Below, piece by piece: positions 32 through 59,249 of a DNA stretch of 64,000 bases. The position numbers and the translations under genes are program-made. The notes under the pieces were generated by a model. It did not search any database. It worked only from the letters and a program-made list of their open reading frames with translations, and was not told where the DNA came from. The stretch is taken from the sequence record NC_042013.1. The stretch is one strand, 5' to 3'. Position 1 is the first letter of the stretch. Each line of letters begins with the position of its first letter.

Positions 32-84
32 TTGACATTATTTTTGAATAGTGTATAACTGAATCATCGAAACGTTGAAGGAGA
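32..84 (+). promoter_or_regulatory. Early promoter-leader cassette (TTGACA-N16-TATAAC, ATCGAAAC, AAGGAG RBS)
   Basis: TTGACA 32-37, TATAAC 54-59, then catcgaaacgttgaaggag just before ATG 92; same layout recurs 9 more times in the window. Confidence 0.85.
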
Positions 85-91
85 TTTAAAA

Positions 92-274
92 ATGGAAAAT
101 GAAGCTAATACCGTTTGCAAGTTGTACCCTCGTTACGATAATTGTGCAAAATTTGCGGCCAAAATTGAAATGGCAAAGCCTGAAGAACGTCTTTCTCTGA
201 TCTATCAGTACGTCAAAACTAACAAAATAGGTCTTGGTGTTTTTACTAAGATGATCAGCGACTACGTAAAGTAA
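92..274 (+). CDS. Small early hypothetical protein
   Basis: 60 aa ORF directly behind the promoter cassette and AAGGAG RBS. Confidence 0.75.
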   Translation: MENEANTVCKLYPRYDNCAKFAAKIEMAKPEERLSLIYQYVKTNKIGLGVFTKMISDYVK

Positions 275-309
275 TTTATATAAAATATAATAACATTAAG
301 GAGAACGGT

Positions 310-600
310 ATGAGTCGCGGAAAATATAGCCCGAATTGCCCACACGCGGGTGATCGTTCGTATGAATACAAGTATAATGCGGATAAACAAATTCCTCCTG
401 AATTTGATCCAAAAACTGATGTCTACAACGAGCGCCTACATTTCGGTGATTACGATTCGGAAGGTTTTGATAGATACGGTTATTCGTCTTTTGACAGCGA
501 CGGCAAGTTCGTTGGATTGGGTAACGGTGTTGATCGTAACGGATATACCGAAATGGACTATCTCACAATGTCGGACGACGAATTTTTCTACCACCTCTGA
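310..600 (+). CDS. Hypothetical protein with D-x-x-G-F/Y-D-R-x-G-Y repeats
   Basis: 96 aa, GGAG RBS, repeats YDSEGFDRYGY and VDRNGY; ends at a terminator. Confidence 0.75.
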   Translation: MSRGKYSPNCPHAGDRSYEYKYNADKQIPPEFDPKTDVYNERLHFGDYDSEGFDRYGYSSFDSDGKFVGLGNGVDRNGYTEMDYLTMSDDEFFYHL

Positions 601-604
601 TTAT

Positions 605-631
605 AAAAAAGGGCGCTTAAAGCGCCCTTTT
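605..631. terminator. Bidirectional rho-independent terminator
   Basis: aaaaaa-gggcgct-taa-agcgccc-tttt between convergent genes. Confidence 0.85.
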
Positions 632-632
632 G

Positions 633-2456: not shown

Positions 2457-2482
2457 ATAGATGCTCCTGATAGCTTTTCATA

Positions 2483-2489: not shown

Positions 2490-2508
2490 TTCGTAATAAT
2501 AGTAGTAT

Positions 2509-3105
2509 TTAACTCGTGATGATTCTAATTGTGTAAACAATTTCAATCATTCTATTCAATGATTTTGCCACAGGAGAGAAAATACAATGGGATATTAGAC
2601 TTCCTTGTTCTGGTCCAGCAGGACTATAAGTCTTTAACCCAATTTCATCAAACACAAATGGAGAATCCAAATCATTAGAATCGTCAAATGCCTCTTGACC
2701 TGCTGGTTCGGAATATTCGAGAGTACACTTAATGATAACATCTGAATAAACCGTACCAGTCAAATGTCGAACCTCGATATAATTTTTTGAAGGATCGGTG
2801 TTTAACGGGCTTTGATCATTAACCACTTTATAATATGTTGGATTATAAAGTTCGGCATTGATACCAACTACATTAGGAGGAAAATAAGTGATACCGCCTG
2901 TACCCGAAACAGCAGAACCACCTGAACCAAACTGCATTTCTTGGATATTTCCTTCCGGCCTTCCTGCAAGGCCACGTGCCAAAGCGATACTCATCGTTTC
3001 ATAATTTATCTGGTTGTGTTTATCAACGAGAACTTCACCGGTTGTTACGTCTTTTATCAATACGTGACCGAACATTTCTTGCTTGCTTAAATCTAATGTA
3101 GTCAT
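2509..3105 (-). CDS. Conserved virion structural (tail/baseplate-associated) protein
   Basis: 198 aa within the structural operon; GHVLI...GEVL..K.N.I.YE.MS.ALA, FDEIGL and K.LNR.IEI.YT.RI motifs recalled from jumbo myovirus structural proteins. Confidence 0.65.
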   Translation of the reverse strand: MTTLDLSKQEMFGHVLIKDVTTGEVLVDKHNQINYETMSIALARGLAGRPEGNIQEMQFGSGGSAVSGTGGITYFPPNVVGINAELYNPTYYKVVNDQSPLNTDPSKNYIEVRHLTGTVYSDVIIKCTLEYSEPAGQEAFDDSNDLDSPFVFDEIGLKTYSPAGPEQGSLISHCIFSPVAKSLNRMIEIVYTIRIITS

Positions 3106-39814: not shown

Positions 39815-39819
39815 TCATA

Positions 39820-39842
39820 ATCTCCTTAATTCGTTTCGATGA
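39820..39842 (-). repeat. 23-bp direct repeat copy of the cassette core
   Basis: atctccttaattcgtttcgatga, identical to 40184-40206. Confidence 0.9.
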
Positions 39843-40179
39843 CAACAAAATGAAAGAAACCGCTTTCGTTGAGGCTGGAAATAAGAGTCTTGATGTTTTC
39901 TTTCATTTCGGTAGTTGCGCCGTTAAATTCATCAAAAATGATGAGAATGGCCTTGGATGTTTTTTCGGCACGGTTAAGAATAATAGTTTCAATGGTCTTA
40001 AGACCTTTAACACCTTCGATCAACGGGCAACGAAAATCAAGAACGCAGTACTTCTTGTAAGATGTCGTGATTGCATAAACCAAACCGTCGCCAGCGGATT
40101 TTTCGCAAAAAGTGATACCAGTGCAACCGTTAATGTCATTAGCCAAAGTGTTAAGGTTCTGTGCAACGGTCTTGGTCAT
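39826..40179 (-). CDS. Hypothetical protein, degenerate P-loop/AAA-like
   Basis: 117 aa; ILIIFDEF Walker-B-like motif without a clear Walker A; first gene after a cassette. Confidence 0.65.
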   Translation of the reverse strand: MTKTVAQNLNTLANDINGCTGITFCEKSAGDGLVYAITTSYKKYCVLDFRCPLIEGVKGLKTIETIILNRAEKTSKAILIIFDEFNGATTEMKENIKTLISSLNESGFFHFVVIETN

Positions 40180-40183
40180 TGGT

Positions 40184-40238
40184 ATCTCCTTAATTCGTTT
40201 CGATGATTAAGTTATACATCATTTGAAAATAATGTCAA
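40184..40238 (-). promoter_or_regulatory. Early promoter-leader cassette
   Basis: TTGACA-N16-TATAAC-ttaatc-ATCGAAAC-gaatt-AAGGAG. Confidence 0.85.
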
Positions 40239-40256
40239 CTGATTTTTAAAATATCA

Positions 40257-40584: not shown

Positions 40585-41217
40585 ATGAGTACTAAACTTA
40601 CCGAACATTCTACTTTTGATTCGGCAAAGATTGTCGTTGAAGGCGGTGGTCTTAATGCTGATGGTAAACCAAAAGACCTTTATCTAAAAGGAACATTCAT
40701 TCAGGGTGGATCACGTAACCAAAACGGACGTATCTATTCTGTAGAAGAAATCAGAAAAGCTGTTGACGATATCAACAACGTCTTGAAAACAAATTCAGTT
40801 CTTGGTGAATTAGACCATCCACCAGAATTAACCATCAACCTCGACCGTGTTTCCCATATGATTACAGAAATGTATATGGATGGTCCTAATGGTATTGGTA
40901 AACTCAAAATTATTCCAACGCCAATGGGTAATATTGCAAAGGTTCTTATCGAATCTGGTTTCAAAATGGGTGTTAGCTCACGCGGTTCCGGTGATGTTGA
41001 TCATAACGGACACGTTCACGGTTTTATGATCAAGACCGTTGACCTTGTATCTGACCCTTCTTGCGTTGCGTCTGTTCCTGTTCCAATTTATGAATCCTTC
41101 TTGAATCATGGTCAAAGAGGTGCTATTCGTTATGATATGGCGCAAAATGCTAATAACGATTCCGCAGCACAAAGATACCTTCGCGAAGAATTACTTCGCT
41201 TCATTGATAGCCTATAA
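40585..41217 (+). CDS. gp21: Prohead core protease, T4 gp21-like
   Basis: NQNGRIY, LGELDHP, NLDRVSH, GVSSRGSG, DLVSDPS. Confidence 0.95.
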   Translation: MSTKLTEHSTFDSAKIVVEGGGLNADGKPKDLYLKGTFIQGGSRNQNGRIYSVEEIRKAVDDINNVLKTNSVLGELDHPPELTINLDRVSHMITEMYMDGPNGIGKLKIIPTPMGNIAKVLIESGFKMGVSSRGSGDVDHNGHVHGFMIKTVDLVSDPSCVASVPVPIYESFLNHGQRGAIRYDMAQNANNDSAAQRYLREELLRFIDSL

Positions 41218-43577: not shown

Positions 43578-44396
43578 TTAAATGGCTTTTGCGTAATTAA
43601 CAATAGTCTGGTCTGCATTGTTATAAACAGAATGCTTGGAAATTCGCCCCTTAAGAACAAAAACGTCACCTTCGTTCTTTTTAAACTTTGGAGACATTAC
43701 AACAATCTGCTTATTTTCTTCATTCGCCATGATGGTAACGTGTACCGTTTCCATACCACCAACGAAATGATTTTCGCGAATAAACGAGGTTGCCTTGATA
43801 ACTCGTACCCGCGTTTCAATGTTACCCTTTTCCACTCCAACAAAACCGGGTTCGAAAGAGAAATTGACACGATCAAAAAGTTCGGGAGTATTGATAATAT
43901 GATGAGCAACTGCCTTCATGATGTTCTCTTCATCAAAGGTATCGACATTCTCAACAACCCATTTCAAATAAGACGTCTTGATATCGGAAAATACTTCACC
44001 GCGATAATAACCAACCGGCATAATACCAGAATGTATCATTGCAATACGTTCGTCATACTGCTGACGGCATACGCGCTTATATTCAGCTTCGCGTTCCGCA
44101 ATTTGACGGGCGCGTTCTTCACGCTCATCTTTCTTCATACGGGTAATGGTTCGCATCTCAGCCTCGAGAGTTTCCTTGGAAGGCTGCTTGCACATAATAC
44201 CCCACTTAAGAGAAATCATCAGAGCCTTGGCAATAACATCGTCAATGTCCTGACCAAGATTAAAATGATGAAACGAACGGATTTCTTTATGTGCACAGTT
44301 GCCATAATGGGAAACGTGTTCGTAGGTTTCACGAAGGGTGTACATTGCGCCTGTTTCACCAATACCAATGTAAAGATTGGGAACAAAATTCGTCAT
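43578..44396 (-). CDS. Early protein with a probable C-terminal OB fold
   Basis: First gene after a cassette; C-terminal GDVFVLKGRISKHSVYNNADQTIV OB-fold-like segment. Confidence 0.65.
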   Translation of the reverse strand: MTNFVPNLYIGIGETGAMYTLRETYEHVSHYGNCAHKEIRSFHHFNLGQDIDDVIAKALMISLKWGIMCKQPSKETLEAEMRTITRMKKDEREERARQIAEREAEYKRVCRQQYDERIAMIHSGIMPVGYYRGEVFSDIKTSYLKWVVENVDTFDEENIMKAVAHHIINTPELFDRVNFSFEPGFVGVEKGNIETRVRVIKATSFIRENHFVGGMETVHVTIMANEENKQIVVMSPKFKKNEGDVFVLKGRISKHSVYNNADQTIVNYAKAI

Positions 44397-44400
44397 AACA

Positions 44401-44454
44401 ATCTCCTTCAACGTTTCGATGGGATAGTTATAACTCTTCTATAAAATAAGTCAA
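44401..44454 (-). promoter_or_regulatory. Early promoter-leader cassette
   Basis: TTGACT-N16-TATAAC-tatccc-ATCGAAAC-gttg-AAGGAG. Confidence 0.85.
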
Positions 44455-44458
44455 TAAC

Positions 44459-44767
44459 TTATTTGTCAATTATATATAAAAGATGTTCAGGAATTAATGA
44501 CTTGTAATCATAGTATTCTTTGGTAGTGATAATCAATTCATGGTATTTTCCCATATATCGAAAATCTACAAATTTTGTGGCATCTACTATAAAAGGAAAA
44601 ACATCAGTTACATCAAAGCATACCTGATAATGGTTACCATGCTCAATTAACCAAAAATATTTTTTGATAACAGCCATTTCACGAATCTCGTCGGATACGT
44701 CAATATCCTTAAACAATTGGTCGAAATCACCGTGATCGTTAGCGGACCATAAATCTATAAAATACAT
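44459..44767 (-). CDS. Hypothetical protein
   Basis: 102 aa ORF. Confidence 0.55.
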   Translation of the reverse strand: MYFIDLWSANDHGDFDQLFKDIDVSDEIREMAVIKKYFWLIEHGNHYQVCFDVTDVFPFIVDATKFVDFRYMGKYHELIITTKEYYDYKSLIPEHLLYIIDK

Positions 44768-45076: not shown

Positions 45077-45101
45077 AAAAAGCCCGCTTTTGGCGGGCTT
45101 T
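45077..45101. terminator. Bidirectional terminator
   Basis: aaaaagcccgc-tttt-ggcgggcttt. Confidence 0.75.
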
Positions 45102-45107: not shown

Positions 45108-45347
45108 TTAAGAATTCTGCAACAGGTGGTTTACGAGTTGACGCATTGCAGGGAATGAATTTACCGAATGCATATCGTTTTCATCCGAGTTTTTAGCAGA
45201 TTCGAAAATGACCTTGTAGGTAACCGTAGCCATCAAAACGGAGGTAATGATCTTGACAATAACCGTATTACCAGCAGCCGTTTTACCGGAAAATGCGATG
45301 TTTTCAAATACAAGACCATTGAAGTCGTCGCGGGAAATCTCTTTCAT
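45108..45347 (-). CDS. Small early hypothetical protein
   Basis: 79 aa, directly behind a cassette. Confidence 0.75.
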   Translation of the reverse strand: MKEISRDDFNGLVFENIAFSGKTAAGNTVIVKIITSVLMATVTYKVIFESAKNSDENDMHSVNSFPAMRQLVNHLLQNS

Positions 45348-45353
45348 AAAAAT

Positions 45354-45407
45354 ACTCCTTAATTCGTTTCGATGATTAAGTTATATACTATTTGGAAAAA
45401 TTGTCAA
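45354..45407 (-). promoter_or_regulatory. Early promoter-leader cassette
   Basis: TTGACA-N16-TATAAC-ttaatc-ATCGAAAC-gaatt-AAGGAG. Confidence 0.85.
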
Positions 45408-45425
45408 TAGATTTTTTTATTTAAG

Positions 45426-45509
45426 TGGTACGCCGCCCCGGACTCGAACCGGGATGCTTTCGCGGAACCTTTTGAGGATTCTGTGTCTAACCAATTTCAC
45501 CAGCGGCGC
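45426..45509 (-). tRNA. tRNA-Leu(CAA)
   Basis: Acceptor GCGCCGC/GCGGCGT, anticodon arm GAATC-CTCAAAA-GGTTC, long variable arm, T arm CCCGG-TTCGAGT-CCGGG, encoded CCA. Confidence 0.92.
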
Positions 45510-45520
45510 ATATAGAAATT

Positions 45521-45596
45521 TGGTAGGCGGGGTCGGGATCGAACCGACGATAAACCTGTTATGAGCAGGTGGCCTTAACCACTTGGCTACCCGCCT
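45521..45596 (-). tRNA. tRNA with CAT anticodon (elongator Met or Ile2)
   Basis: Acceptor AGGCGGG/CCCGCCT, anticodon arm ACCTG-CTCATAA-CAGGT, T arm GTCGG-TTCGATC-CCGAC, encoded CCA. Confidence 0.9.
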
Positions 45597-48732: not shown

Positions 48733-49962
48733 ATGAGTAAACTTTTTGAAAGCAATTGGGATACGGCAAAAGCTGCTCTCTTGGAAGGTAAGGACTTGAC
48801 CCGCAATTTTGACGGTTCTTACAACGACAACAAGAAGCGCGTTATGAACGCTGTCCTTGAAAACGTCCGTAAAGACATTGCAGCACGTTCTGCACCTCTT
48901 ATGGAAAATGCAACCGCAGGCGCAACCTCATCTGGTAACGTAGCTGTCCTTAATCAGGTCATCCTACCTATCATCCGCCGTGTTATGCCTACAATCATCG
49001 CTAACGAAATCGTTGGTGTTCAGCCTATTTCTGGCCCCGTTGCACAGATCTCCACCCTTCGCGTTCGTTATGCGGACTCAGTTGGTGGCGTTAATGGTGT
49101 AACTGCAGGTGCAGAAGCGCTTTCACCTTTCGATATCGCACGTTACTATTCTGGTAACGAAAACCCTGCTAACCCCGGCGCAGCAACAACTTCAGTTCTT
49201 GAAGGTCGCCCCGGTAACCGTCTTAACGTTGAACTCGTTCGTCAGACCGTTGAAGCAAAGACTCGCCGTCTTTCCAGCCGTTGGACGTTCGAAGCAGCGC
49301 AGGACATGCAGTCACAGTATGGCGTTGACCTCGAAGCAGAAGTAATGAACGCTGTTGCTACCGAAATCACAACCGAAATCGACCAAGAAATTCTTGGCGT
49401 TCTTCGTGCGCTTCCCGGTACACCAGCAGCAGTTTACGATCAGGCTAACGTTTCCGGTACGGCTACGTTCGTTGGTGACGAATTCGCGGCACTCGCAATC
49501 CTCATCAACCGTCAGTCAAACCTCATCGCGTCACGCACGAAGCGTGGTCCTGCGAATTGGGCAGTTGTTTCTAACACCGCGCTTACAATTCTTCAGGCTG
49601 CTACAACTTCAGCGTTCGCACGTACGACTGTTGGCACGTTCGAAGCACCTACCAACGTTAAGTACGCTGGTATGCTTAACAACAGCCTTCGCGTTTATGT
49701 TGACACATACGCATCCGACTCTACACCAGTTCTCGTTGGTTATAAGGGTCAGGGCGAAACGGACGCAGCGGCATACTTCTGCCCTTACGTTCCATTGACA
49801 TCAACCGGCGTTGTTATTGACCCACAGACCCTCGAGCCACTCTTGGGCTTCATGTCACGTAACGCTATTCTTACGTTCACCAACTCTGCATCATCCTTCG
49901 GTAACTCTGCGGACTACCTCGGCTTGATCGGTATTGACGCATCAACATTGAAGTTCCTCTAA
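48733..49962 (+). CDS. gp23: Major capsid protein, T4 gp23-like
   Basis: LPIIRRVMPTIIANEIVGVQPISGP, VEAKTRRLSSRWTFEAAQD, EIDQEIL, AYFCPYVPL; strongly biased codons. Confidence 0.97.
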   Translation: MSKLFESNWDTAKAALLEGKDLTRNFDGSYNDNKKRVMNAVLENVRKDIAARSAPLMENATAGATSSGNVAVLNQVILPIIRRVMPTIIANEIVGVQPISGPVAQISTLRVRYADSVGGVNGVTAGAEALSPFDIARYYSGNENPANPGAATTSVLEGRPGNRLNVELVRQTVEAKTRRLSSRWTFEAAQDMQSQYGVDLEAEVMNAVATEITTEIDQEILGVLRALPGTPAAVYDQANVSGTATFVGDEFAALAILINRQSNLIASRTKRGPANWAVVSNTALTILQAATTSAFARTTVGTFEAPTNVKYAGMLNNSLRVYVDTYASDSTPVLVGYKGQGETDAAAYFCPYVPLTSTGVVIDPQTLEPLLGFMSRNAILTFTNSASSFGNSADYLGLIGIDASTLKFL

Positions 49963-49989
49963 GTCATTGATTTGAAAGAACTTTTTAAG

Positions 49990-50015
49990 AAGCCGGGGTT
50001 CTCCCCGGCTTTTTT
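49990..50015 (+). terminator. Rho-independent terminator after the MCP
   Basis: aagccgggg-ttct-ccccggctt-tttt. Confidence 0.85.
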
Positions 50016-50069
50016 ATTTGTTAGACATCCATAATTTTATTTTCGTATACTTACTTTATGTATAAGATA

Positions 50070-50429
50070 TCAATCCTTTTCGTAAAACTTATTACTATTA
50101 AGAGGTGTATTCCAAGCGCCTCTCCAAACCAGAAACTTTTTCATCTTTTTTACATATTTGCCATTATGAAAAGATGCTCTCTGTTTTAGTTTTCTAAGTG
50201 TTGGCATTGGAATCCATAGAGAAATCATGAAATCAAGATTTGACGGGCTGGTATACTTATATTCCCATTTCCCGTTATAATCTACTTTTTCAAGTCTTGA
50301 AATGAATGTAAGATAGACCTCGCCTTTGGTATTGATCCACAATGCACGGTCACCGATAATTCGAACGATTCGACCATAAAAAGAGAAATACTTTTCATCT
50401 TTCAAATAAACAACGTCATTCCTTTTCAT
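50070..50429 (-). CDS. Hypothetical basic protein
   Basis: 119 aa, coupled to the upstream gene. Confidence 0.6.
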   Translation of the reverse strand: MKRNDVVYLKDEKYFSFYGRIVRIIGDRALWINTKGEVYLTFISRLEKVDYNGKWEYKYTSPSNLDFMISLWIPMPTLRKLKQRASFHNGKYVKKMKKFLVWRGAWNTPLNSNKFYEKD

Positions 50430-50430
50430 A

Positions 50431-50820
50431 TTATGCCTCGGTTACTTCGTATGGCTTGTCCCATTTTCCAACATTAACGTCGACATAATGACCAACGTCG
50501 AAATAATCTGTCTGGATATCGCTATTGTTATAATTGTCGGTGTTCATAACTTCGATAACTTCGCGAAGATAGTCGAGTGCTTCTGCGGAAAAATGCTCCT
50601 TGTAGTAATAGACATTAACGTCAATATTGGTTTCCACAATCCGATCATTCCGGCTGGTTTCGTTGTAGTTTTTGATGAAGTCGATTTTACCAGATGTGAT
50701 ATTGAGAACGAGGGTTGAATGATGGCGGATTCCAAGGCGTGCCTTAATACCATACTTCTTGTTGATTTCCTTGATCTTGGGTTCAAGAGCTTTCTTTTTT
50801 TCCTGCGAAATGTAAGCCAT
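50431..50820 (-). CDS. Conserved phage early protein
   Basis: MAYISQEKK...KKYGIK..L.IRHHSTLVLNI.SGKIDF...DIQTDYFDVGHYVDVNVG.WDKPY family recalled from phages; follows a cassette. Confidence 0.8.
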   Translation of the reverse strand: MAYISQEKKKALEPKIKEINKKYGIKARLGIRHHSTLVLNITSGKIDFIKNYNETSRNDRIVETNIDVNVYYYKEHFSAEALDYLREVIEVMNTDNYNNSDIQTDYFDVGHYVDVNVGKWDKPYEVTEA

Positions 50821-50825
50821 TGGAA

Positions 50826-50880
50826 ATCTCCTTCATTCGTTTCGATGATTAAGTTATACACTATCGAAAAATAAAGTCAA
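50826..50880 (-). promoter_or_regulatory. Early promoter-leader cassette
   Basis: TTGACT-N16-TATAAC-ttaatc-ATCGAAAC-gaatg-AAGGAG; TTCGAT in the spacer forms an IR with ATCGAA. Confidence 0.85.
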
Positions 50881-50884
50881 CTGA

Positions 50885-51085
50885 TTATTCTGGTATATTG
50901 GAGAGAAAAACGGTTGTAGATTCTTCAAGACCGTTTTTATAAAAAGAGAAAATATCGCTTACTTGCATCATAGGCCAATCCTCGATGCCAAATATTTTTT
51001 CGTTGAAATATGGAATTCTGGATAAAAAGATTGGCTTTGAATCACCGTGTTCACTTGTGAATACAACTTTATGGAGTGTTGACAT
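50885..51085 (-). CDS. Hypothetical protein
   Basis: 66 aa with GGAG RBS. Confidence 0.55.
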   Translation of the reverse strand: MSTLHKVVFTSEHGDSKPIFLSRIPYFNEKIFGIEDWPMMQVSDIFSFYKNGLEESTTVFLSNIPE

Positions 51086-51102
51086 CGAAAAGCTCCGATT
51101 GG

Positions 51103-51753
51103 TTATCTTAGACCTATTTTCATTTTTACATATTCGGCAACATCGATTGATAAATTATCAATACTGTCCATTGCGACTATTTCATCGAATACCGCTGCTA
51201 ATTGTACCTCAGTAGATGGGTTTTCTATATATGTTATAACCGCACCTCTATTTTTTACTGCTATCAATTTCATTTCCTCGGTTGGGTTTTCTATACATTC
51301 AATTGCCCAACCGCTATTTTTCACAGCAGCTAATTTTACTACATCGGATGGATTCTTGATATGTTCAATGTTTGTACCCTCGTAGTTTACGGATAACAAT
51401 TGCATTTCTTCTGTAGGGTTGTCTACAAATTGTATTGCATGGCCACTTGACCGAATAGCCGCTAACTTAACAGTTTCGGATGGATTTTTTATATGTTCTA
51501 ATACCATTCCATCTTCACTAACCGCTGCTAATTGAACGTTCTCAGAAGGTTCGTTTATATATCGTATAGACGAACCATAATATTTCACAGATTCTAGTTG
51601 TAATTTTTCAGACGGATTTTTGATAAATTTTATAACATTATATCCGTAACGAACTGCTGATAAGAGCATTTCCTCGGTTGGATTTTCTATGAACCGTATT
51701 GCGGTTGGATTATAACTTAATAATTCCAAAATTTCTTCATTTGATTGTTTCAT
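51103..51753 (-). CDS. Tandem 24-aa repeat protein (DUF4116-like)
   Basis: About 8 repeats of I.NP(S/T)E.VQL.AV..NG..I. Confidence 0.8.
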   Translation of the reverse strand: MKQSNEEILELLSYNPTAIRFIENPTEEMLLSAVRYGYNVIKFIKNPSEKLQLESVKYYGSSIRYINEPSENVQLAAVSEDGMVLEHIKNPSETVKLAAIRSSGHAIQFVDNPTEEMQLLSVNYEGTNIEHIKNPSDVVKLAAVKNSGWAIECIENPTEEMKLIAVKNRGAVITYIENPSTEVQLAAVFDEIVAMDSIDNLSIDVAEYVKMKIGLR

Positions 51754-51762
51754 AGCTATCCT

Positions 51763-52545
51763 CTAGAATGAAAACAAATCGTTACCGATGCTTGGATTAT
51801 TGTCTTTGACTCGTTCTACTGCTTTTTCATAATACTCATCATTTTGTTCCATGCAAATCCATTGACGTTTTGTATTTTCGGCAGCAATAGCTGTTGTGCC
51901 AGAACCAGCGGTATTATCCAGAACCATTTCGCCGGGATTGGTATATGTTTTGATAATATATTCAAAAAGGGCGACGGGTTTTTGTGTTGGATGAAAACCG
52001 GTTTCGCGACTTATTTCAATTCGTTGTTTTGGAAAATTGGTGAATTCTTGACGATGCTCTTTACCGGCAGTTCTGAGTGAACCTTTTCCGTTAGAGATAT
52101 GCTCACCTTTGAGTGTAGCACCACCTTGGGAGGCGCTATTTTTACGAACGACACTTGCCATTTGAACGCCTTGAGGATTGTATGTGGGTTGCTTCTTATA
52201 GAAAACACAAACGTCCTCAAGGTGTCGCAATGGTTGTTTAGAGGCATTTGCGAAACCAGTAACGCTAATCTTGTCCCATACCCACGTGTATTTGAAGTGC
52301 TTTATTTGGCTTGAAATAAGGGCTGTGGTGAACGGTTGTGCGCTGGTTAGTACGATAGCACCGTTTGCTTTAATAACGCGCCAGTATTGTTCCCAAAGCG
52401 GTTCAAAGGGTATTATGCTATCCCACGCGCAAGATGTTGTACCATAAGGAAGGTCGCAGAGGATAAGATCAACGGTTCCTTGTGGAATATCTTTCATTAA
52501 TTCAAGGCAATCACCTTTTAAGAACGTACCATTACCTAATTTCAT
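51763..52545 (-). CDS. N4-cytosine/N6-adenine DNA methyltransferase (beta class), orphan
   Basis: GDCLELM, motif IV CDLPY, HPTQKPV, motif I LDNTAGSGTT. Confidence 0.9.
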   Translation of the reverse strand: MKLGNGTFLKGDCLELMKDIPQGTVDLILCDLPYGTTSCAWDSIIPFEPLWEQYWRVIKANGAIVLTSAQPFTTALISSQIKHFKYTWVWDKISVTGFANASKQPLRHLEDVCVFYKKQPTYNPQGVQMASVVRKNSASQGGATLKGEHISNGKGSLRTAGKEHRQEFTNFPKQRIEISRETGFHPTQKPVALFEYIIKTYTNPGEMVLDNTAGSGTTAIAAENTKRQWICMEQNDEYYEKAVERVKDNNPSIGNDLFSF

Positions 52546-52546
52546 A

Positions 52547-52771
52547 TTATTTCCATTTAATGTTTTTAATAATCTTCGTATTTCTTATGTAATCAAAAAT
52601 TCCCATAACAATAACATACCCAATCAGTATAGGAATAATGAAAAACCATCCGAATATTTCACGGACGGTTTTGTTTTTATGCAAAATTTTTGAATCATTT
52701 CTGGTGATATAGACACACGTTGCCATAAAACAACCATATAATATTACCGGAATAATCAATAACCAAATCAT
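52547..52771 (-). CDS. Small membrane protein
   Basis: 74 aa with two hydrophobic segments. Confidence 0.6.
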   Translation of the reverse strand: MIWLLIIPVILYGCFMATCVYITRNDSKILHKNKTVREIFGWFFIIPILIGYVIVMGIFDYIRNTKIIKNIKWK

Positions 52772-53814
52772 TTTTCGCCTTTTTTAAACAGCGTGATAGC
52801 TGCCATTTTTCTCCAGTCACCACCGGATTTGTAGATACTTGCCAACTGTACAACACGTCGCATCGTAATACCATTAAATTTTTCAATATTGGTCTTGAAA
52901 AAATCAAAAACTTCGATTTGTTCATCAACACTGATACCGTGCTTTCGAAGAAATCCCGTTTCGATGACCTGTTCGATACGAGCGAGTCGTTCCGTTGTGC
53001 CATACATGTCAAGATCGAGAACTAGGCAACGATCTTGAATTGCAGATAGATGTTTGGAAAGGCGATTGTCTTTTTCAATAAGGGCGGTGAAATCAAGGTT
53101 GGTAAGAAAGATAACAGAACCCTCGAATTTGAAGGAACTCGGAACGGATTTATTGGTGGCCGACGATACCCTCCAAGAAACAATACGTTCGTCAGATGTA
53201 TCCATTGCAGCTTTCAAAAGATTCAATGCGTCCTCGTCACCAAATACCGCATCGCAGTCATCGATTGCGAGAACTTGACCGGCTTCTTTGTGATCAAATA
53301 GGAGTTCATAAAGCGCCGCAGCGGTAGAACGACCGGCAACGATACTGAAACGAGAACCAATACGCGAGGCGTCTTCGCTTTCTTTTACATCAAAGTTTTC
53401 TTCGGAGATGGTTGTGAAAACATTTTTGACTTCGTATGTTTTGCCGATACCGGGAGGGCCAGATACGATCAAACCGCGAATGGTCCCTTCACAAACAGAC
53501 GTTGTCAGGTGCGTTAGGGCATTAAACCGTTCGGTAATGCGGTTCTTGATATCGTTATACGTTTCTACCTTATTTTCTGGTGCTGGATTCAGAACAATCG
53601 CCTCATTGTTGTTGTAATCTACAAGCACGTTTTCTGGAGAAACGTGAATGCGAAACTTCCTCTGAAGATAGTTAGGATTGGACGTTCCATCAACAAGAAT
53701 GAACGTGCCATCTTGACCGTTACGGAAAAGTGAACCTTTAAGGAGTTCGGCGGTGTATACTTCGTTACGAATAACGTGATTGCCGTGTTTTCCGTCGATG
53801 ATTTTAACTTGCAC
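52768..53814 (-). CDS. AAA+ ATPase
   Basis: Walker A SGPPGIGKT, Walker B VLAIDDCD, FLTN sensor motif, QDR arginine finger; GTG start with AAGGAG RBS. Confidence 0.85.
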   Translation of the reverse strand: MQVKIIDGKHGNHVIRNEVYTAELLKGSLFRNGQDGTFILVDGTSNPNYLQRKFRIHVSPENVLVDYNNNEAIVLNPAPENKVETYNDIKNRITERFNALTHLTTSVCEGTIRGLIVSGPPGIGKTYEVKNVFTTISEENFDVKESEDASRIGSRFSIVAGRSTAAALYELLFDHKEAGQVLAIDDCDAVFGDEDALNLLKAAMDTSDERIVSWRVSSATNKSVPSSFKFEGSVIFLTNLDFTALIEKDNRLSKHLSAIQDRCLVLDLDMYGTTERLARIEQVIETGFLRKHGISVDEQIEVFDFFKTNIEKFNGITMRRVVQLASIYKSGGDWRKMAAITLFKKGEK

Positions 53815-53825
53815 GTTCGTTCTCC

Positions 53826-54035
53826 TTAGTTAAAAGTATCAAATTTACGGTCAGCCTCGGAAACGGCTTCTTCCAGTGTGTTGTATTTTGCTGGCTTGCG
53901 GTCGGTCATTGGGATATAGAAACGCCACGTTTTATTATCATGCTGTTCCTGAATATGGAAGCCACCATTTACGTTGGATACTACGCGGTTATTGTAAAAT
54001 CCGGTTCCGATATTTTCCTTGACTACGTTGCTCAT
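53826..54035 (-). CDS. Small early hypothetical protein
   Basis: 69 aa directly behind a cassette. Confidence 0.7.
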   Translation of the reverse strand: MSNVVKENIGTGFYNNRVVSNVNGGFHIQEQHDNKTWRFYIPMTDRKPAKYNTLEEAVSEADRKFDTFN

Positions 54036-54041
54036 AAAAAT

Positions 54042-54094
54042 AACTCCCTTACGTTTCGATAAGGGAGTTATATATCATTCAAAAATAATGTCAA
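54042..54094 (-). promoter_or_regulatory. Early cassette with an RBS-sequestering hairpin
   Basis: TTGACA-N16-TATAAC; AACTCCCTTA-TCGAAACG-TAAGGGAGTT perfect 10-bp stem. Confidence 0.85.
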
Positions 54095-54098
54095 CTCT

Positions 54099-54299
54099 TT
54101 ATTTTACGAATTTCCAACCTTCTTGTTGGTATCGTCCAACAACACCGGTTTTAATGCATTTCATATCATACACGTACCTACGGGTTTTTTCACTCCATAG
54201 TTTATCAACACATTCAAACTTTTTTCCGGTTTCGAAAACATCTTTGTAAATGCTACCGACAACCGGTTCGTCTACTATTGTCCAACTCCCTTTTTCCAT
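54099..54299 (-). CDS. Hypothetical protein
   Basis: 66 aa, coupled to the upstream gene. Confidence 0.65.
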   Translation of the reverse strand: MEKGSWTIVDEPVVGSIYKDVFETGKKFECVDKLWSEKTRRYVYDMKCIKTGVVGRYQQEGWKFVK

Positions 54300-54892
54300 T
54301 ACGCATTTTCCCTTTCGCGCTTGATAACATCAATAGCAGCCATGATGTGGTTGAAAGGAACTTTCCGGCCCCGAAGATACCAATCATAACGAATCCACTT
54401 TGTGCCGAAATAGTTCTGGCAGTAATGACCTTGAACGCCAACACCCTTGACGAACGTTTCGTCACCAACGAAAGTAACGAGGGCCTCCATCGTAGCCTTA
54501 ACGATGTCGAAATTTTCGCGATTCTTTTCGATCATTTCGATAACCGATTTACGGATTACCTGTTCAGGGTTAACCTTTGCTTCGCGCTTCACAATTGGCA
54601 TAGCCTTGATTTCTTCGCGCATATCAACAAGCTTCTGAACCTGTTCCCAATGTTCAGCCGTGAAGAATTCCTGATGCTTTGGCCGGATTTGATGAAGACC
54701 GAATGGGCGGTTCCAGCAATCCTTCATGTTGTCAGCATCGTTAGCGCGTTCGGTGATTTCTTCATAGAAACGATTAAGGGCGTCGGTTGCTTCCTTAATC
54801 TTGGTCTTGGAACCTTCGCCCGCTTCCATAACGGCGTTAACGCGTGCGGTGTACATTTCGCGGGCCTTGTCGGAAAGGTCTCTGTAACCCAT
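54299..54892 (-). CDS. Early hypothetical protein
   Basis: Likely start MGYRDLSD at 54892 behind the cassette RBS. Confidence 0.75.
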   Translation of the reverse strand: MGYRDLSDKAREMYTARVNAVMEAGEGSKTKIKEATDALNRFYEEITERANDADNMKDCWNRPFGLHQIRPKHQEFFTAEHWEQVQKLVDMREEIKAMPIVKREAKVNPEQVIRKSVIEMIEKNRENFDIVKATMEALVTFVGDETFVKGVGVQGHYCQNYFGTKWIRYDWYLRGRKVPFNHIMAAIDVIKRERENA

Positions 54893-54899
54893 TTGAAAG

Positions 54900-54953
54900 T
54901 CTCCTTTGTTCGTTTCGATGATTAAGTTATACACCATCGAAAAATAAAGTCAA
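54900..54953 (-). promoter_or_regulatory. Early promoter-leader cassette
   Basis: TTGACT-N16-TATAAC-ttaatc-ATCGAAAC-gaaca-AAGGAG; TTCGAT/ATCGAA IR flanks the -10. Confidence 0.85.
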
Positions 54954-54971
54954 CTGAATATTTTGATTATT

Positions 54972-55265
54972 TTAACGTGCGTATACCGCCCCATATTCGG
55001 TTACGGCGCTGAGACCCTTGTCATCCGAATAGATAGACCCGCGCACACCTTTTGCTGGTGCTTTCCAGCTTGCTGCCTTGAGGATATGACCGGTTGCGAT
55101 TTCTACAAAGCAATAAACAGAACGCTGACCATACGATTCGGAAATGACCTTAACGTTTTTCCTACCACGTTCAGTTTGTAGATCGGGTTGATTGACACCA
55201 CGTGCCGCCCGCATAGAACTTGCAACATTGATAAAGTTTTCAAGGGCGGTTTCAAAATCGGTCAT
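54972..55265 (-). CDS. Conserved phage early protein
   Basis: SVYCFV...TG.ILKAASWKAPAKGVRGSI motif recalled from many phages. Confidence 0.8.
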   Translation of the reverse strand: MTDFETALENFINVASSMRAARGVNQPDLQTERGRKNVKVISESYGQRSVYCFVEIATGHILKAASWKAPAKGVRGSIYSDDKGLSAVTEYGAVYAR

Positions 55266-55271
55266 TTATCA

Positions 55272-55324
55272 ACTCCTGTAATGTTTCGATGATGTAGTTA
55301 TACACCATCGAAAAATAATGTCAA
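55272..55324 (-). promoter_or_regulatory. Early promoter-leader cassette
   Basis: TTGACA-N16-TATAAC-tacatc-ATCGAAAC-attac-AGGAG. Confidence 0.85.
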
Positions 55325-55331
55325 CTGATTT

Positions 55332-55532
55332 TTAAATTGCGTTGTATGCGTTATGTTCGCTAACCTCGTCACACGCCTCGAGAATGGCCTTTGCGACGAT
55401 TTCGGAAATGCCAAGAGTCTCAATAAGCATCGTTAGCTTACGATCATCTGTCCTTCCACCAACGGAACCAAAACGTTCATCAACCAGATTCGCGATGGCG
55501 ATCTTAAGAATATTAACTTCATTGATAGGCAT
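55332..55532 (-). CDS. Small early hypothetical protein
   Basis: 66 aa behind a cassette. Confidence 0.7.
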   Translation of the reverse strand: MPINEVNILKIAIANLVDERFGSVGGRTDDRKLTMLIETLGISEIVAKAILEACDEVSEHNAYNAI

Positions 55533-55540
55533 AATAAAAA

Positions 55541-55594
55541 CTCCCTTATATGTTTCGATAAGGGAGGTATATATTATTCCAAATTGGATGTCAA
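55541..55594 (-). promoter_or_regulatory. Early cassette with an RBS-sequestering hairpin
   Basis: TTGACA-N17-TATACC; CTCCCTTAT-CGAAACAT-ATAAGGGAG stem-loop. Confidence 0.8.
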
Positions 55595-55848
55595 ATGCCT
55601 AATTGAAGAATTCGGCAACTATTTACTAGATACCGATTCCCTTCAAGTTCGTATGTGTTTAAAATATCTGTTTCCAAGCCATACACTGAATAGCCAGCAT
55701 GATTGGATGCACATCTAATTGCATCAGAAATATTTTTAAACACTATACCGCCTTTATAATCTTTTGACCTACCTAATTTTTTGAATTCATAACCGAATTC
55801 ATAAATTCCTTGATCATACGATTCTTTATGGCCGACAGTAAACATCAT
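55591..55848 (-). CDS. Hypothetical protein
   Basis: 85 aa, ATGA-coupled to the Thg1-like gene. Confidence 0.65.
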   Translation of the reverse strand: MMFTVGHKESYDQGIYEFGYEFKKLGRSKDYKGGIVFKNISDAIRCASNHAGYSVYGLETDILNTYELEGNRYLVNSCRILQLGI

Positions 55849-56636
55849 TGGCTTGAATAAACCAATTCCATTCTTTCTTCGAAGGGCATGTTTCTAAAAT
55901 CAACATTGAGATTAACATACCTTGATCGAATAACAGAATCATTTTCATATTCGCCGGTAGTATCGATTTCGTAGTTTTCGCGTTTCACAAAATTACCGAA
56001 CGTTTTAAGAATGTTTTCTTCAAAATCTGGAACGCTGTTTTTTACGAGTTCAAGTTTGTCACGTGTACTCATATTCATAAGTTTAGAATGACCAAACAAA
56101 TGATGTGCGTAATCCTGAATAACGTTTCTCGTAGCATCTTGCCAACGCCATACAAGCATGTTCACCGCTTCGAATTTTTCTTTAAAAACAACGAAACGAC
56201 AATCAAACGATACCTCAGGTACATACTTATACGCCTCGTTAAAATGGTAAATCCAACGAGCAGTAAAATATGACGCCAAAACAGAATTCAACTTAGTCAG
56301 ATTTCCGTTGAAAGGTAGCTGAGAAACGCCGCCCTTTACAAGTGGTTGGAAAAACAAACTAATTTCGTCTGATTGATGAAAACCGATAGTTAGGTTGAAC
56401 TCTTTAACGGTGTCTTTAACTGCTTCCACAAAAACATTTTCAAATGCATAATCTCTTGGTTTTACCAACATATTTGAAGATGCCATTTTCTTTGTAAATT
56501 TAGAAAAAGACCGACCATCAAGCCTTGCATATAGATACAAAGTGTCGGTTTCGTCATCATCCTTAAATTCTACAAACGAACGAAGTTCTCTTTCATAACA
56601 CTTCATCCGGTCGCCAAAATCATCATTTTTCATCAT
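55845..56636 (-). CDS. thg1: tRNA(His) guanylyltransferase Thg1-like 3'-5' polymerase
   Basis: DFGDRMK.YE, YARLDGRSFSKFTK, HQSDEISL, FDCRF, WRWQDATRN. Confidence 0.9.
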   Translation of the reverse strand: MMKNDDFGDRMKCYERELRSFVEFKDDDETDTLYLYARLDGRSFSKFTKKMASSNMLVKPRDYAFENVFVEAVKDTVKEFNLTIGFHQSDEISLFFQPLVKGGVSQLPFNGNLTKLNSVLASYFTARWIYHFNEAYKYVPEVSFDCRFVVFKEKFEAVNMLVWRWQDATRNVIQDYAHHLFGHSKLMNMSTRDKLELVKNSVPDFEENILKTFGNFVKRENYEIDTTGEYENDSVIRSRYVNLNVDFRNMPFEERMELVYSSQ

Positions 56637-56955: not shown

Positions 56956-57233
56956 TATTTTCTTCCTCCTTTGAGACTTAAAATCTTATCATACAACACA
57001 TCGTCTCCTGAAGCAAGTGTCAATAGTTCATCAATTGAATCTTCGTCAACGATATATTTTACTTCAGGGGTTGATAATGCATCAACAATTTTTGTTGAAA
57101 TGCCTAATGAAGGTCCACCTGATCCACTTAAAATTTCACCGGTTGCAACACACGTAATAATGGCGGCAGTTGCGAAACCGAAACCCTCTTGTGGATATAC
57201 AGGTGAAAGAATATAATATTCTGGTTTTTTCAT
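56955..57233 (-). CDS. Hypothetical protein
   Basis: 92 aa, in the operon. Confidence 0.6.
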   Translation of the reverse strand: MKKPEYYILSPVYPQEGFGFATAAIITCVATGEILSGSGGPSLGISTKIVDALSTPEVKYIVDEDSIDELLTLASGDDVLYDKILSLKGGRK

Positions 57234-57236
57234 TAA

Positions 57237-58430
57237 TTAATCCTCGTAATCAACTTCTATAAGGTTAAGTCTTACATTTTCTAACAAGTCTTGATAATCA
57301 GGATACACTAATTGTTCCTGATTTCCAAACAGATTTGTCATTGTTATATCAAGTTCATTTACTCTATCAAACTTTCTAATGAACCTCGTTGCGTTCTTTT
57401 TAAACAACTTTTCAAACATTCTGTTATGAAGTTTTTCAGCCTTTTGTTCAATAAGATTTCTATCTGTTTGGCGTTGAGTGATTACCACACGCTTCTCTTC
57501 TGGAAGTTTTGAATAATCAGCACACGTCATTACGTTGCTTTCTTTTATGATCAAATCCTCCATTCCTGCTTTACAATGAAATATGATAGAGACCATATGA
57601 TCAAAAACAGTAACGTTAGGGCTATAAACACAAATCTTGGCAATGAAATTCCCGGTGGTGGCATCCAATACAGTTGTACTACACGCACCGTGCGACATCG
57701 TAACTGAACTCGTTTTTTTAAGAACAAAAATGTATTTCTTGCCGGTAATCCTTATTTCCTCACCAGACAAAAATAGACCAGTTGAACCATCGCCCGCATA
57801 TGTTTCAAAAAGTTTTGCACTTCTTTTCAATGCTTTCTTTGTTTCCTTTTTAATTTCTGTTTTCTTTGGAACTGGAATTTGTACTTGACTTGGTGTTTGC
57901 GTCGACCGCTTATATTCGTGTGTTATTTTAAATTCACGAATCGTGTCTTTATGTTCAAACTCATTCCATTGACGTTCAATTCTGTCCCAAAAAGAAAAGT
58001 ATCTCTCGTTTCTTTTCAACTCGTCATATGGATTATAAATGTGGATTCCATTCTTTTTGATGGCGCGTGGCATATCACGCACGAATGAGCTTTCAGGTAT
58101 GGCCAGTTGACCAACCAACTCTCGTAATTCATGACGAATGTTTTTTGGACGATTAAACACCGCATATGCAAGGCAGAATGCAACGTGTTCAACTGGTGCG
58201 TTTTTTTGCCATTCAATATATTTTTCTTCTAACCAAATAGATTGCCCTGATATTGTTTGGTCTAAAGTTTCTCGTGAATTATCGTATGAATCAATCAATC
58301 CATTTGTATCTTCGTTGAACCATATAAGCCACGCATAAACATCTGGTGGAAGTGTTTTGAATTCCATCAGTGAGTCTATACAATATTGGATATCAGGTGC
58401 AATGTAGCACATAAGATTGATTTTAATCAT
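57237..58430 (-). CDS. Hypothetical protein with a conserved-looking ICVYSP...FD segment, partner of the GG-tailed protein
   Basis: 397 aa; starts 4 nt after the stop of 58435-58788. Confidence 0.75.
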   Translation of the reverse strand: MIKINLMCYIAPDIQYCIDSLMEFKTLPPDVYAWLIWFNEDTNGLIDSYDNSRETLDQTISGQSIWLEEKYIEWQKNAPVEHVAFCLAYAVFNRPKNIRHELRELVGQLAIPESSFVRDMPRAIKKNGIHIYNPYDELKRNERYFSFWDRIERQWNEFEHKDTIREFKITHEYKRSTQTPSQVQIPVPKKTEIKKETKKALKRSAKLFETYAGDGSTGLFLSGEEIRITGKKYIFVLKKTSSVTMSHGACSTTVLDATTGNFIAKICVYSPNVTVFDHMVSIIFHCKAGMEDLIIKESNVMTCADYSKLPEEKRVVITQRQTDRNLIEQKAEKLHNRMFEKLFKKNATRFIRKFDRVNELDITMTNLFGNQEQLVYPDYQDLLENVRLNLIEVDYED

Positions 58431-58434
58431 ATTA

Positions 58435-58788
58435 TTAACCGCCAGCGAACTGCTTCATACCAACCGAGTGATTAGTTGCAATTTCAGTTGCAGTGGTTGA
58501 CGGGCGAATTGTATCAATCATATTGGTGAGGCGGCTTACAATTCCAACCTTTCCGTCTGTGAACATCTTAGCAATGTCATCATCAGGAATATTAATGGTT
58601 CGGCTGGTAACGTCCTTAAGGGAATTAACCGGAATCTCGTCTCCCGTAAACGGTGCTACAATGAAAAATCGGACACCAGCATCCAGTTTTTTCTGGATGA
58701 TTTGTTCCATTTCTTTATCTTTAGCGGCGTCCCACGTTACTACAAGGTGTCCCATTTCATTTAAAAGAGTAAGGCTTCGTTCAATCAT
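58435..58788 (-). CDS. Small protein ending in Gly-Gly (ubiquitin-like modifier candidate)
   Basis: 117 aa, AGGAG RBS, C-terminus HSVGMKQFAGG-stop; beta-strand-like N-terminus. Confidence 0.75.
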   Translation of the reverse strand: MIERSLTLLNEMGHLVVTWDAAKDKEMEQIIQKKLDAGVRFFIVAPFTGDEIPVNSLKDVTSRTINIPDDDIAKMFTDGKVGIVSRLTNMIDTIRPSTTATEIATNHSVGMKQFAGG

Positions 58789-58837
58789 TATACACTCCTA
58801 AAGTAAAAGGCCACCGTAAACGATGGCCTTGATATTG

Positions 58838-59185
58838 TCAAGAACGCTTTTTGTTCTTTCTGGCAAGCTTTGGTCGCTTGATAGCAATATCCGAAAGAGA
58901 ATATCGAAGGGCGAGCATAAGGGAGTCTTCATCATTCTGAAGATAAACCTTATCAACGTAAACGATCTTTTCGGCATAAGAACCGTCGTCGTTACGAATG
59001 GACTTTTCGTGGGTGTAGCAAGTTACCTTGTAATAACCGGAACAATTTTCGCGGCACCAAGAAAGAATATCATCAGGGGCAACCTGATGTTCATTTACCC
59101 AAAACTTATGGGTGAAAACGTAATAATACGAAATGTCACCAAAACGTTCGCTATGACGACCGAAATCCTTAATGGTTGTAGACAT
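58838..59185 (-). CDS. Early hypothetical protein (small expanded phage domain)
   Basis: DDILSWCRENCSG...VYLQNDEDSLMLALRY; first gene after a cassette. Confidence 0.7.
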   Translation of the reverse strand: MSTTIKDFGRHSERFGDISYYYVFTHKFWVNEHQVAPDDILSWCRENCSGYYKVTCYTHEKSIRNDDGSYAEKIVYVDKVYLQNDEDSLMLALRYSLSDIAIKRPKLARKNKKRS

Positions 59186-59192
59186 TCAAAAC

Positions 59193-59249
59193 ACTCCTTT
59201 GCTTCGTTATCGATGCAAAAGGTATATCATTCGTGATTTAAGATGTCAA
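59193..59249 (-). promoter_or_regulatory. Variant early cassette (ATCGATAAC)
   Basis: TTGACA-N17-TATACC-ttttgc-ATCGATAAC-gaagca-AAGGAG; ccttttgc/gcaaagg stem. Confidence 0.7.

Follow-up and report, generated by a model that had tools for sequence, protein, structure and literature searches.

The 64,000-nucleotide stretch analyzed here (the window) matches at 100% bases 124001 to 188000 of Agrobacterium phage Atu_ph07 (GenBank accession number MF403008.1), a jumbo phage of the genus Polybotosvirus with a genome of 490,380 bp. It carries ten copies of a compact intergenic cassette, in which a predicted promoter is joined to a near-invariant 8-mer, ATCGAAAC, a ribosome-binding site, and the ATG of the gene that follows. 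A search for TTGACW-N16/17-TATAMC returns exactly ten sites in the window, far beyond the 0.08 expected from shuffled sequences, and these are the very ten copies listed in an earlier note on this DNA. Eight of them have the N16-TATAAC arrangement and two (55594 and 59249; sites are named here by the position of the -35 box) have N17-TATACC. In nine of the ten, ATCGAAAC is found 6 nt past the -10 box, with site 59249 carrying ATCGATAAC instead, and all ten continue with an AAGGAG-type ribosome-binding site and an ATG at which the GenBank coding sequence starts. The earlier note had described just this, a near-invariant 8-mer with one variant and an A(A)GGAG-type site in every copy. The ten cassettes and a leader-only copy are as follows.

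20..94, plus strand: cassette 1, with the -35 box at 32-37, TATAAC at 54-59, ATCGAAAC at 66-73, AAGGAG, and ATG at 92; it heads a 60-aa open reading frame (ORF).
40177..40250, minus strand: cassette 2, with the -35 box at 40238, ATCGAAAC at 40197-40204, and ATG at 40179; the gene behind it, a 117-aa ORF, belongs to a minus-strand island that separates the portal region from the prohead-core genes, and the hairpin of the cassette is weak.
44394..44466, minus strand: cassette 3, with the -35 box at 44454, ATCGAAAC at 44413-44420, and ATG at 44396; the ORF that it heads encodes 272 aa.
45345..45419, minus strand: cassette 4, with the -35 box at 45407, ATCGAAAC at 45366-45373, and ATG at 45347; it adjoins tRNA-Leu (45426-45509).
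50818..50892, minus strand: cassette 5, with the -35 box at 50880, ATCGAAAC at 50839-50846, ATG at 50820, and an inverted repeat of 7 bp around the -10 box; the two ORFs that it heads are in a tail-to-tail arrangement with the major capsid gene.
54033..54106, minus strand: cassette 6, with the -35 box at 54094, ATCGAAAC at 54053-54060, and ATG at 54035; the bases just past the -10 box are paired with the ribosome-binding site, followed by a T-run (-17 kcal/mol, z score of -5.2).
54890..54965, minus strand: cassette 7, with the -35 box at 54953, ATCGAAAC at 54912-54919, and ATG at 54892; an 8-bp inverted repeat, TTTCGATG/CATCGAAA, brackets the -10 box.
55263..55336, minus strand: cassette 8, with the -35 box at 55324, ATCGAAAC at 55283-55290, and ATG at 55265; a 13-bp palindrome is centered on the -10 box (-15.6 kcal/mol, z score of -4.3).
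55530..55606, minus strand: cassette 9, with the -35 box at 55594, N17, TATACC, ATCGAAAC at 55552-55559, and ATG at 55532; a hairpin over the ribosome-binding site is followed by a T-run.
59183..59261, minus strand: cassette 10, with the -35 box at 59249, N17, TATACC, the variant ATCGATAAC, ATG at 59185, and a hairpin with a T-run; the operon that it heads has gene homologues in phage Phosso, the closest sequenced relative of Atu_ph07.
39818..39842, minus strand: leader-only copy, consisting of ATCGAAAC (39833-39840), the bases that precede the ribosome-binding site, and AAGGAG, with no promoter; nhmmer matches model positions 53-77 only. It lies inside the 3' end of the upstream ORF, holds the stop codon of that ORF, and precedes a 57-aa ORF. 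Either a deletion left it behind, or it is a translation-start module put to new use.

Each cassette fills its whole intergenic gap in the same order: an A-rich tract with the stop codon of the upstream gene, TTGACa, a T-rich spacer of 16 nt, TATAAC, 6 nt, ATCGAAAC, AAGGAG, and ATG. The whole-genome motif scan that the earlier note had suggested finds about 45 full copies in Atu_ph07, along with 5 promoter-only copies that have no 8-mer and the single leader-only copy; a profile built from the exact copies gave 50 matches genome-wide at E values below 1e-3. A generic promoter scanner missed the family because it demands a T at the last position of the -10 box. When 40 copies are aligned in register, conservation extends from about -45 to +20 and is zero outside. 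The A-rich tract at the 5' edge, with AAAtAAt at -44 to -40, often holds the upstream stop codon, and the conserved blocks are TTGAC (invariant), the spacer segment TTATTTTT, TATAACT (of which TATAAC is nearly invariant), (C)ATCGAAAC(G), and AAGGAG. In this alignment, ATCGAAAC has as much information content as the -35 and -10 boxes. The 8-mer begins at the predicted +1, 4 to 6 nt ahead of the ribosome-binding site: as its A follows the -10 box after six bases and stands at a C-A junction, it is the expected +1, and transcription would start there.

Structural genes belong to a class distinct from the cassettes and are preceded by T4-type TATAAATA late motifs and weaker ribosome-binding sites. 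This motif occurs 41 times genome-wide, with the following examples in the window.

About 40540: TATAAATA late motif before the prohead-core gene at 40585.
About 47410: TATAAATA late motif before the gene at 47475.
About 21360: TATAAATA late motif before the gene at 21322 (minus strand).

The 2018 genome paper on Atu_ph07 never uses the word "promoter." The phage encodes a gp55-like late sigma factor. The related jumbo phage PA5oct, whose capsid protein is 60% identical to that of Atu_ph07, relies on the RNA polymerase of its host, and its mapped transcription starts have TTGAC/TATAATA promoters (PMC7318152). Given the position of the late TATAAATA motifs at structural genes, the gp55-like factor, and the promoters of PA5oct, the cassettes are best read as the putative early, host-sigma70 promoter class of Atu_ph07. 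With the sigma70-type promoters of PA5oct and the early promoters of T4 they would share the TTGAC and TATAAT-like boxes, the AT-rich intergenic DNA, and the host RNA polymerase; in contrast, neither a conserved initial transcribed 8-mer nor a role in recombination has been reported for PA5oct (PMC7318152).

The constraint on each part of the cassette can be seen from the substitution rates in 43 orthologous cassette pairs.

-10 box: 0.4%.
Ribosome-binding site: 1.4%.
-35 box: 1.6%.
ATCGAAAC: 1.7%.
Flanks: 3.3%.
Bases -6 to -1: 6.2%.
Variable half of the spacer: 12%.

ATCGAAAC is a genuine third conserved block, constrained about as strongly as the promoter boxes and the ribosome-binding site. 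The hypervariable part of the spacer changes 3.6 times faster than the flanks, which fits exchange between paralogous cassettes. Outside the cassettes, ATCGAAAC occurs 39 times genome-wide, compared with a median of 19 and a maximum of 65 for control 8-mers of the same composition, and its four other copies in the window are all background except for the leader copy at 39833-39840 (minus strand). Since the noncassette copies are found at background frequency, the 8-mer is special only within the cassette. Most likely (we put this at about even odds), it acts in cis as a constrained initial transcribed sequence and 5' leader, which would affect initiation or escape and the 5' end of the mRNA. 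In very strong early promoters of coliphages, such as T5 N25 and T7 A1 (transcript AUCGA...), a conserved sequence after +1 aids promoter strength or escape, and the start is likewise an A followed by a U. Those, however, are a handful of loosely similar promoters, whereas Atu_ph07 has at least 40 exact copies of the 8-mer.

Many cassettes can also form a stem-loop. Folding of the stretch from just past the -35 box to the ATG gives z scores below -2 for 18 of the 45 copies (about 40%), including 5 of the 10 in the window, and the hairpins take three positions. In class A, a 13-bp palindrome has its center on the -10 box and is formed by pairing of the spacer with the ATCGAAA-containing segment (in the window, 55324 and, in part, 54953); one genome copy has this palindrome stretched to 18 bp, with matching changes in both arms. 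In class B (54094, 55594, and 59249 in the window), the bases just past the -10 box pair with the ribosome-binding site and a T-run follows. These three window hairpins look like terminators, and two of them (54094 and 55594) were flagged in an independent terminator scan. In class C, the spacer is paired with the ribosome-binding site, and the hairpin spans the whole promoter. Permutation of the arms between copies abolishes class B pairing (p = 0.0005), and an inverted repeat of at least 6 bp across the -10 box is present in 14 of the 45 copies, compared with 2.9 expected. The TTCGAT/ATCGAA inverted repeat that the earlier note had seen around the -10 box in three copies is indeed there, at 50880, 54953, and 55324, with a length of 7 to 8 bp.

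In all hairpin types, the predicted start comes after the 5' arm, which is either in the spacer or in the six bases just past the -10 box; therefore, only read-through RNA or single-stranded DNA can form the hairpin. In read-through transcripts, it would attenuate transcription and hide the ribosome-binding site, and transcripts begun at the cassette itself would stay translatable. In the T4 genes e, soc, 49, and I-TevI, the ribosome-binding site is hidden by a hairpin in read-through RNA, and a promoter inside the hairpin gives a translatable RNA. The geometry is that of the cassette hairpins that pair with the ribosome-binding site, with a 5' arm ahead of the start and the ribosome-binding site in the 3' arm; however, the internal promoter of T4 is a late one, whereas that of Atu_ph07 would be early.

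Behind 42 cassettes, the first gene encodes 99 aa at the median and 272 aa at most, and 9 of these 42 genes have a homologue in Phosso. An all-against-all comparison shows them to be mutually unrelated, with one weak pair. Among the bases within 2 kb of a cassette, 24% are in Phosso-conserved genes, compared with 43% genome-wide, and none of 2,000 random draws gave so low a value. Cassettes head small orphan genes in poorly conserved regions, in line with the small accessory genes of the earlier note. Three short ORFs of the window are open in Atu_ph07 and called in the assemblies of its relatives but absent from the GenBank annotation; these are located at 44459-44767, 52547-52771, and 55591-55848 (all on the minus strand) and encode 102, 74, and 85 aa, respectively. 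Directly upstream of cassette 45407 are tRNA-Leu(CAA) and tRNA-Met(CAT) genes (window 45426-45596, minus strand). An Rfam scan of the window found tRNA only, with the Met gene alone reported at the gathering threshold.

Near-identical wild relatives of Atu_ph07 are present in public runs, and they were reached through cluster members of the capsid protein and of the cassette-headed proteins; none of the RNA runs contains the phage. The capsid protein itself is less than 60% identical to those of T4-type phages and 73% identical to that of Phosso; a search of IMG/VR with it gave no Atu_ph07 relative above 66%, and an exact look-up of a 97-aa window protein returned Atu_ph07 alone. From the public assemblies of the relatives (contigs of 497,883, 492,394, 56,195, and 45,862 bp, and others), we fetched 20-kb stretches around six regions, compared about 104 kb of DNA with Atu_ph07, and counted differences of at least 100 bp. 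There are 27 distinct structural differences, and in 8 of these a junction lies no more than 20 nt from a cassette, although cassettes with 20 nt on each side make up 2.8% of the compared bases and about 5.6% of the events would be expected there (binomial p = 7.7e-5). Breakpoints thus fall at cassettes far more often than by chance, which answers the test that the earlier note had set. In four clean events, a single chimeric cassette in one phage corresponds to two direct cassettes that flank extra ORFs in the other, with 54 to 62 nt of overlapping homology (relatives are referred to by the labels of their loci, such as L127).

Genome 71957 x 73648: 1.7 kb with five ORFs, absent in L135; the crossover is near the -35 box.
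Genome 123713 x 124032 (the latter being cassette 1 of the window, whose natural recombination partner lies 319 bp upstream): an 87-aa ORF, absent in L127 and L131, which have one chimeric cassette in place of these two, with a different ORF in L128; the crossover is between the -35 box and position -4.
Genome 115613: an additional cassette with an 80-aa ORF, present in L127.
Genome 291703 x 292227: about 460 bp, absent in L137; the crossover is in the upstream tract and the -35 box.

Chimeric cassettes in the clean events were resolved to base level. Their crossovers are placed wherever the partners share 20 to 32 identical bases, and none of them is at the 8-mer. In a fifth event (294494), a cassette is split around a 135-aa ORF. 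Relatives also have an 822-bp insertion between the end of tRNA-Leu and the upstream edge of cassette 45407. Cassette 5 (50880) is a mosaic boundary in relatives, with 111 differences in 825 positions (13.5%) on the gene side versus 1 to 3% on the other side. Between cassette copies, the longest shared identical run has a median of 12 nt, rising to 22 nt for the best partner, and the identity usable for recombination is 20 to 48 bp.

Two kinds of apparent rearrangement were set aside. The contigs of relatives that break at cassettes (window 50001-56000) reflect a repeat effect, and many cassette-to-cassette joints had short sides, derived from other cassette copies, and were not counted as deletions. 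In a four-gamete test on cassette segments, the haplotypes were too diverse to be informative.

Searches for integrase and resolvase domains (PF00589 and PF00239) found none in the 490-kb genome, with positive results in control genomes, whereas general recombination genes, for a RecA-fold recombinase and Rad50-like proteins, are present. Gene shuffling by recombination at the cassettes is thus supported, but a dedicated recombination core is not, because the crossovers avoid ATCGAAAC and there is no integrase or resolvase.

The same comparison revealed variation at other places. An insertion hotspot is located right after the capsid gene (window 49958-50070), before convergent minus-strand genes. 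There, at least five assemblies contain a gene for a homing endonuclease (NUMOD3) of about 330 aa that is absent in Atu_ph07 and L113; inserted DNA at this hotspot is found in L111 (11281-13546), L115 (5470-6462), and L117 (1880-4365). L111 has two further ORFs at this site, and L117 has instead a 595-aa DUF7487 protein and a 230-aa ORF. A 12-bp GC-rich terminator follows the capsid gene at 49987-50014, and at 45079-45101, where L111 has a 320-bp insertion, convergent genes have a strong two-way terminator hairpin between them. In one relative, locus L127 (from a 497,955-bp contig) encodes at 17989-19278 a 429-aa protein of the IS605 OrfB/TnpB type beside a gp13-like neck gene; this gene is absent at the respective place in Atu_ph07 (genome about 107,300). 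Finally, a 205-bp in-frame length difference in a large ORF (genome 77853-78059; L134, about 13650-13856), which encodes 863 aa in Atu_ph07 and 785 aa in four relatives, is probably due to an internal repeat.

Beyond these relatives, the cassette has a narrow distribution. Its pattern was found in Atu_ph07 alone in a search of IMG/VR, 185,579 species genomes, and 50,697 phage records, and Phosso has no cassette of the Atu_ph07 type. JGI metagenomes yielded one contig (L109, Ga0247741_1016132) from an unrelated phage, encoding tRNA-Lys and tRNA-Arg, which displays the same -10 box, 8-mer, and ribosome-binding site with a different spacer. Its two loci are at 29-101 and 2934-3005, and the second promoter has a 12-bp inverted repeat that joins the spacer and the ribosome-binding site. 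The lineage specificity claimed in the earlier note is therefore upheld, with the addition of the near-identical relatives and this one contig. Phosso (PV764938.1) has an early cassette family of its own, with about 50 copies in the layout GGTTGAC, spacer, TTCCTATGTTA, GGAGATCGAAnATG (for example, at 14679, 9459, 143317, and 382244; loci L004 to L027). Its hairpins are up to 16 bp long and enclose the -10 box, the ribosome-binding site can be their 3' arm, and ATCGAA recurs between the ribosome-binding site and the ATG. The families of Phosso and L109 have the same architecture as that of Atu_ph07, with much longer stems and a different sequence.

We consider it rather probable (roughly 0.7) that the cassettes are compact regulatory elements of the promoter-early stem-loop (PeSL) kind, so that a mechanism of T4-type phages would be at work in a distant jumbo-phage lineage. 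Each would consist of a strong early promoter of the sigma70 type, fused to a conserved leader that begins with ATCGAAAC and ends in AAGGAG and ATG. With 20 to 48 bp identical between copies, the cassettes serve as portable homology for the general homologous recombination of the phage, and natural populations show deletion, insertion, and replacement of modules of an ORF and its cassette between cassettes. PeSL cassettes have been described in the pairs RB49/phi1, T4/PST, and KVP40/nt-1 (PMC2839356; PMC4122927); they fall into five subclasses by stem-loop position, with an upstream stop codon at the 5' end and a ribosome-binding site and ATG at the 3' end (PMC2839356). The Atu_ph07 cassettes resemble them in filling the intergenic gap in the same order, from the stop codon and AT-rich tract to the ribosome-binding site and ATG; in their sigma70-like boxes and, for the roughly 40% of copies that fold clearly, a stem-loop whose place relative to the promoter varies; in their preference for orphan genes in hyperplastic regions; and in having the junctions of indels and replacements between close relatives inside the elements, with no dedicated recombinase. 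The earlier note had invoked PeSL cassettes and modular shuffling, and both the architecture and the cassette-bounded events, four of them with overlapping homology, agree with this.

There are also differences from the PeSLs. The host and lineage are others (a 490-kb Polybotosvirus of Agrobacterium), a clear stem-loop is found in only about 40% of the copies, the stems are AT-rich rather than polyG/polyC, and the invariant 8-mer at the start site is an extra block that has not been described for PeSLs. Promoter and terminator activity and mini-circles are experimental results for PeSLs, whereas promoter and terminator activity of the Atu_ph07 cassettes are predicted from sequence. The PeSL mechanism itself was already known; what is new here is its kind in a distant lineage, the added start-site 8-mer, and the evidence from natural populations.

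Several observations weigh against the PeSL explanation. Indels without any cassette account for 19 of the 27 differences and include homing endonucleases (NUMOD3), an IS605-type insertion, and miscellaneous cases. The edges of blocks conserved with Phosso are not marked by cassettes (7 of 45 versus 23% expected, with crude gene calls). Over half of the cassettes have no convincing stem-loop, and the class A palindromes, which share one common spacer variant and possibly one ancestor, may be of single ancestry and so would not be independent. The low rate of ATCGAAAC is marginal when taken by itself, with 6 differences in 344 sites compared with about 11 expected from the flank rate, and a purely cis-acting role offers no obvious reason for eight consecutive near-invariant bases. 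What the sequences show directly is the anatomy of the cassettes, their number and placement, the hairpins, and the indels bounded by cassettes; early timing, a start at the A of ATCGAAAC, activity as promoter and attenuator, and the role of the 8-mer are predictions made from motifs and from analogy with other phages.

The conservation of the 8-mer could instead mean that ATCGAAAC is the site of a lineage-specific factor, recognized either on the DNA from +1 to +8 or at the 5' end of the mRNA, which would switch the approximately 45 promoters jointly. We regard such a factor as possible but doubtful. If it existed, early shutoff would take a route other than T4 AsiA, and the palindromic copies would be high-affinity sites.

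In its DNA version, which appears unlikely, ATCGAAAC would be an operator half-site for a phage or host DNA-binding protein, by which the regulon is shut off or held until a signal; copies with the mirror TTTCGAT in the spacer would then be full operators, with two half-sites bracketing the -10 box. Eight consecutive near-invariant bases at a fixed place over the predicted start would be natural in an operator, as would the frequent inverted repeats across the -10 box, which in genome copy 453142 reach 11 bp with compatible changes in both arms. The phage has no homologue of the T4-type early-shutoff factor AsiA, hence some other shutoff route is needed, and the unrelated metagenome phage has kept the 8-mer despite a different spacer. 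However, conservation of the upstream arm is far below that of the 8-mer, with the central CG in about a quarter of the copies, and the half-sites are about 23 bp apart from center to center, which is not two exact helical turns. Stem-loops of the PeSL type account equally well for the inverted repeats, the stems of Phosso co-vary freely, which argues for structure over protein recognition, and no candidate binding protein was found.

In the RNA version, to which we give slightly less credence, AUCGAAAC at the 5' ends of early mRNAs would either act as a translation enhancer or be bound by a factor of the phage, namely a translational repressor, a nuclease, or an enzyme that modifies the 5' end, resulting in regulon-wide posttranscriptional control. 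The position of the 8-mer, from the predicted +1 to just before the ribosome-binding site, fits this; so does the promoter-less copy, which retains the 8-mer and the ribosome-binding site ahead of an ORF, but it may be a mere deletion remnant. ATCGAA is present in the early leaders of Phosso too, and hence in the mRNA of both phages, but that match is a 6-mer only, and searches of the phage for homologues of RegA and RegB (PF01818 and PF10715) gave no match.

According to a further explanation, the likeness of the cassettes reflects selection toward one promoter optimum, and they have no part in rearrangement. As established for T4, strong early promoters of phages resemble one another more than host promoters do, and most exact identities between the cassette copies are short, as the median longest run of 12 nt indicates. 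This explanation is nevertheless contradicted, and very improbable, given the four indels with both ends in cassettes and chimeric cassettes at the junctions, the enrichment of junctions at cassettes, and a variable spacer that changes so much faster than the flanks between orthologues. Least credible and largely refuted is the proposal of the earlier note that ATCGAAAC is a recombination core, here of a dedicated integron-like site-specific system: integrons with their attC sites do exchange small promoter-associated modules of orphan genes as units, the gene modules of Atu_ph07 are bounded by cassettes, and the junction of the leader-only copy is exactly at the 5' edge of the 8-mer, but the mapped crossovers lie upstream of the 8-mer in differing segments, five promoter-only copies have no 8-mer, and an integron requires an integrase and a defined crossover point, neither of which was found in a phage with general recombination genes and no tyrosine or serine recombinase.

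With the PeSL explanation, Atu_ph07 gains an early-promoter regulon of about 45 transcription units, and PeSL-type shuffling extends to a 490-kb jumbo phage far from the classical T4-like phages, as seen in natural variants rather than in a single laboratory pair. The cassettes would provide a portable strong promoter-plus-ribosome-binding-site module for Agrobacterium, and the invariant start-site 8-mer gives clean, testable access to the control of early genes in a phage without AsiA. Shuffling of this kind may also be a mechanism for the turnover of the many small orphan genes of jumbo phages.

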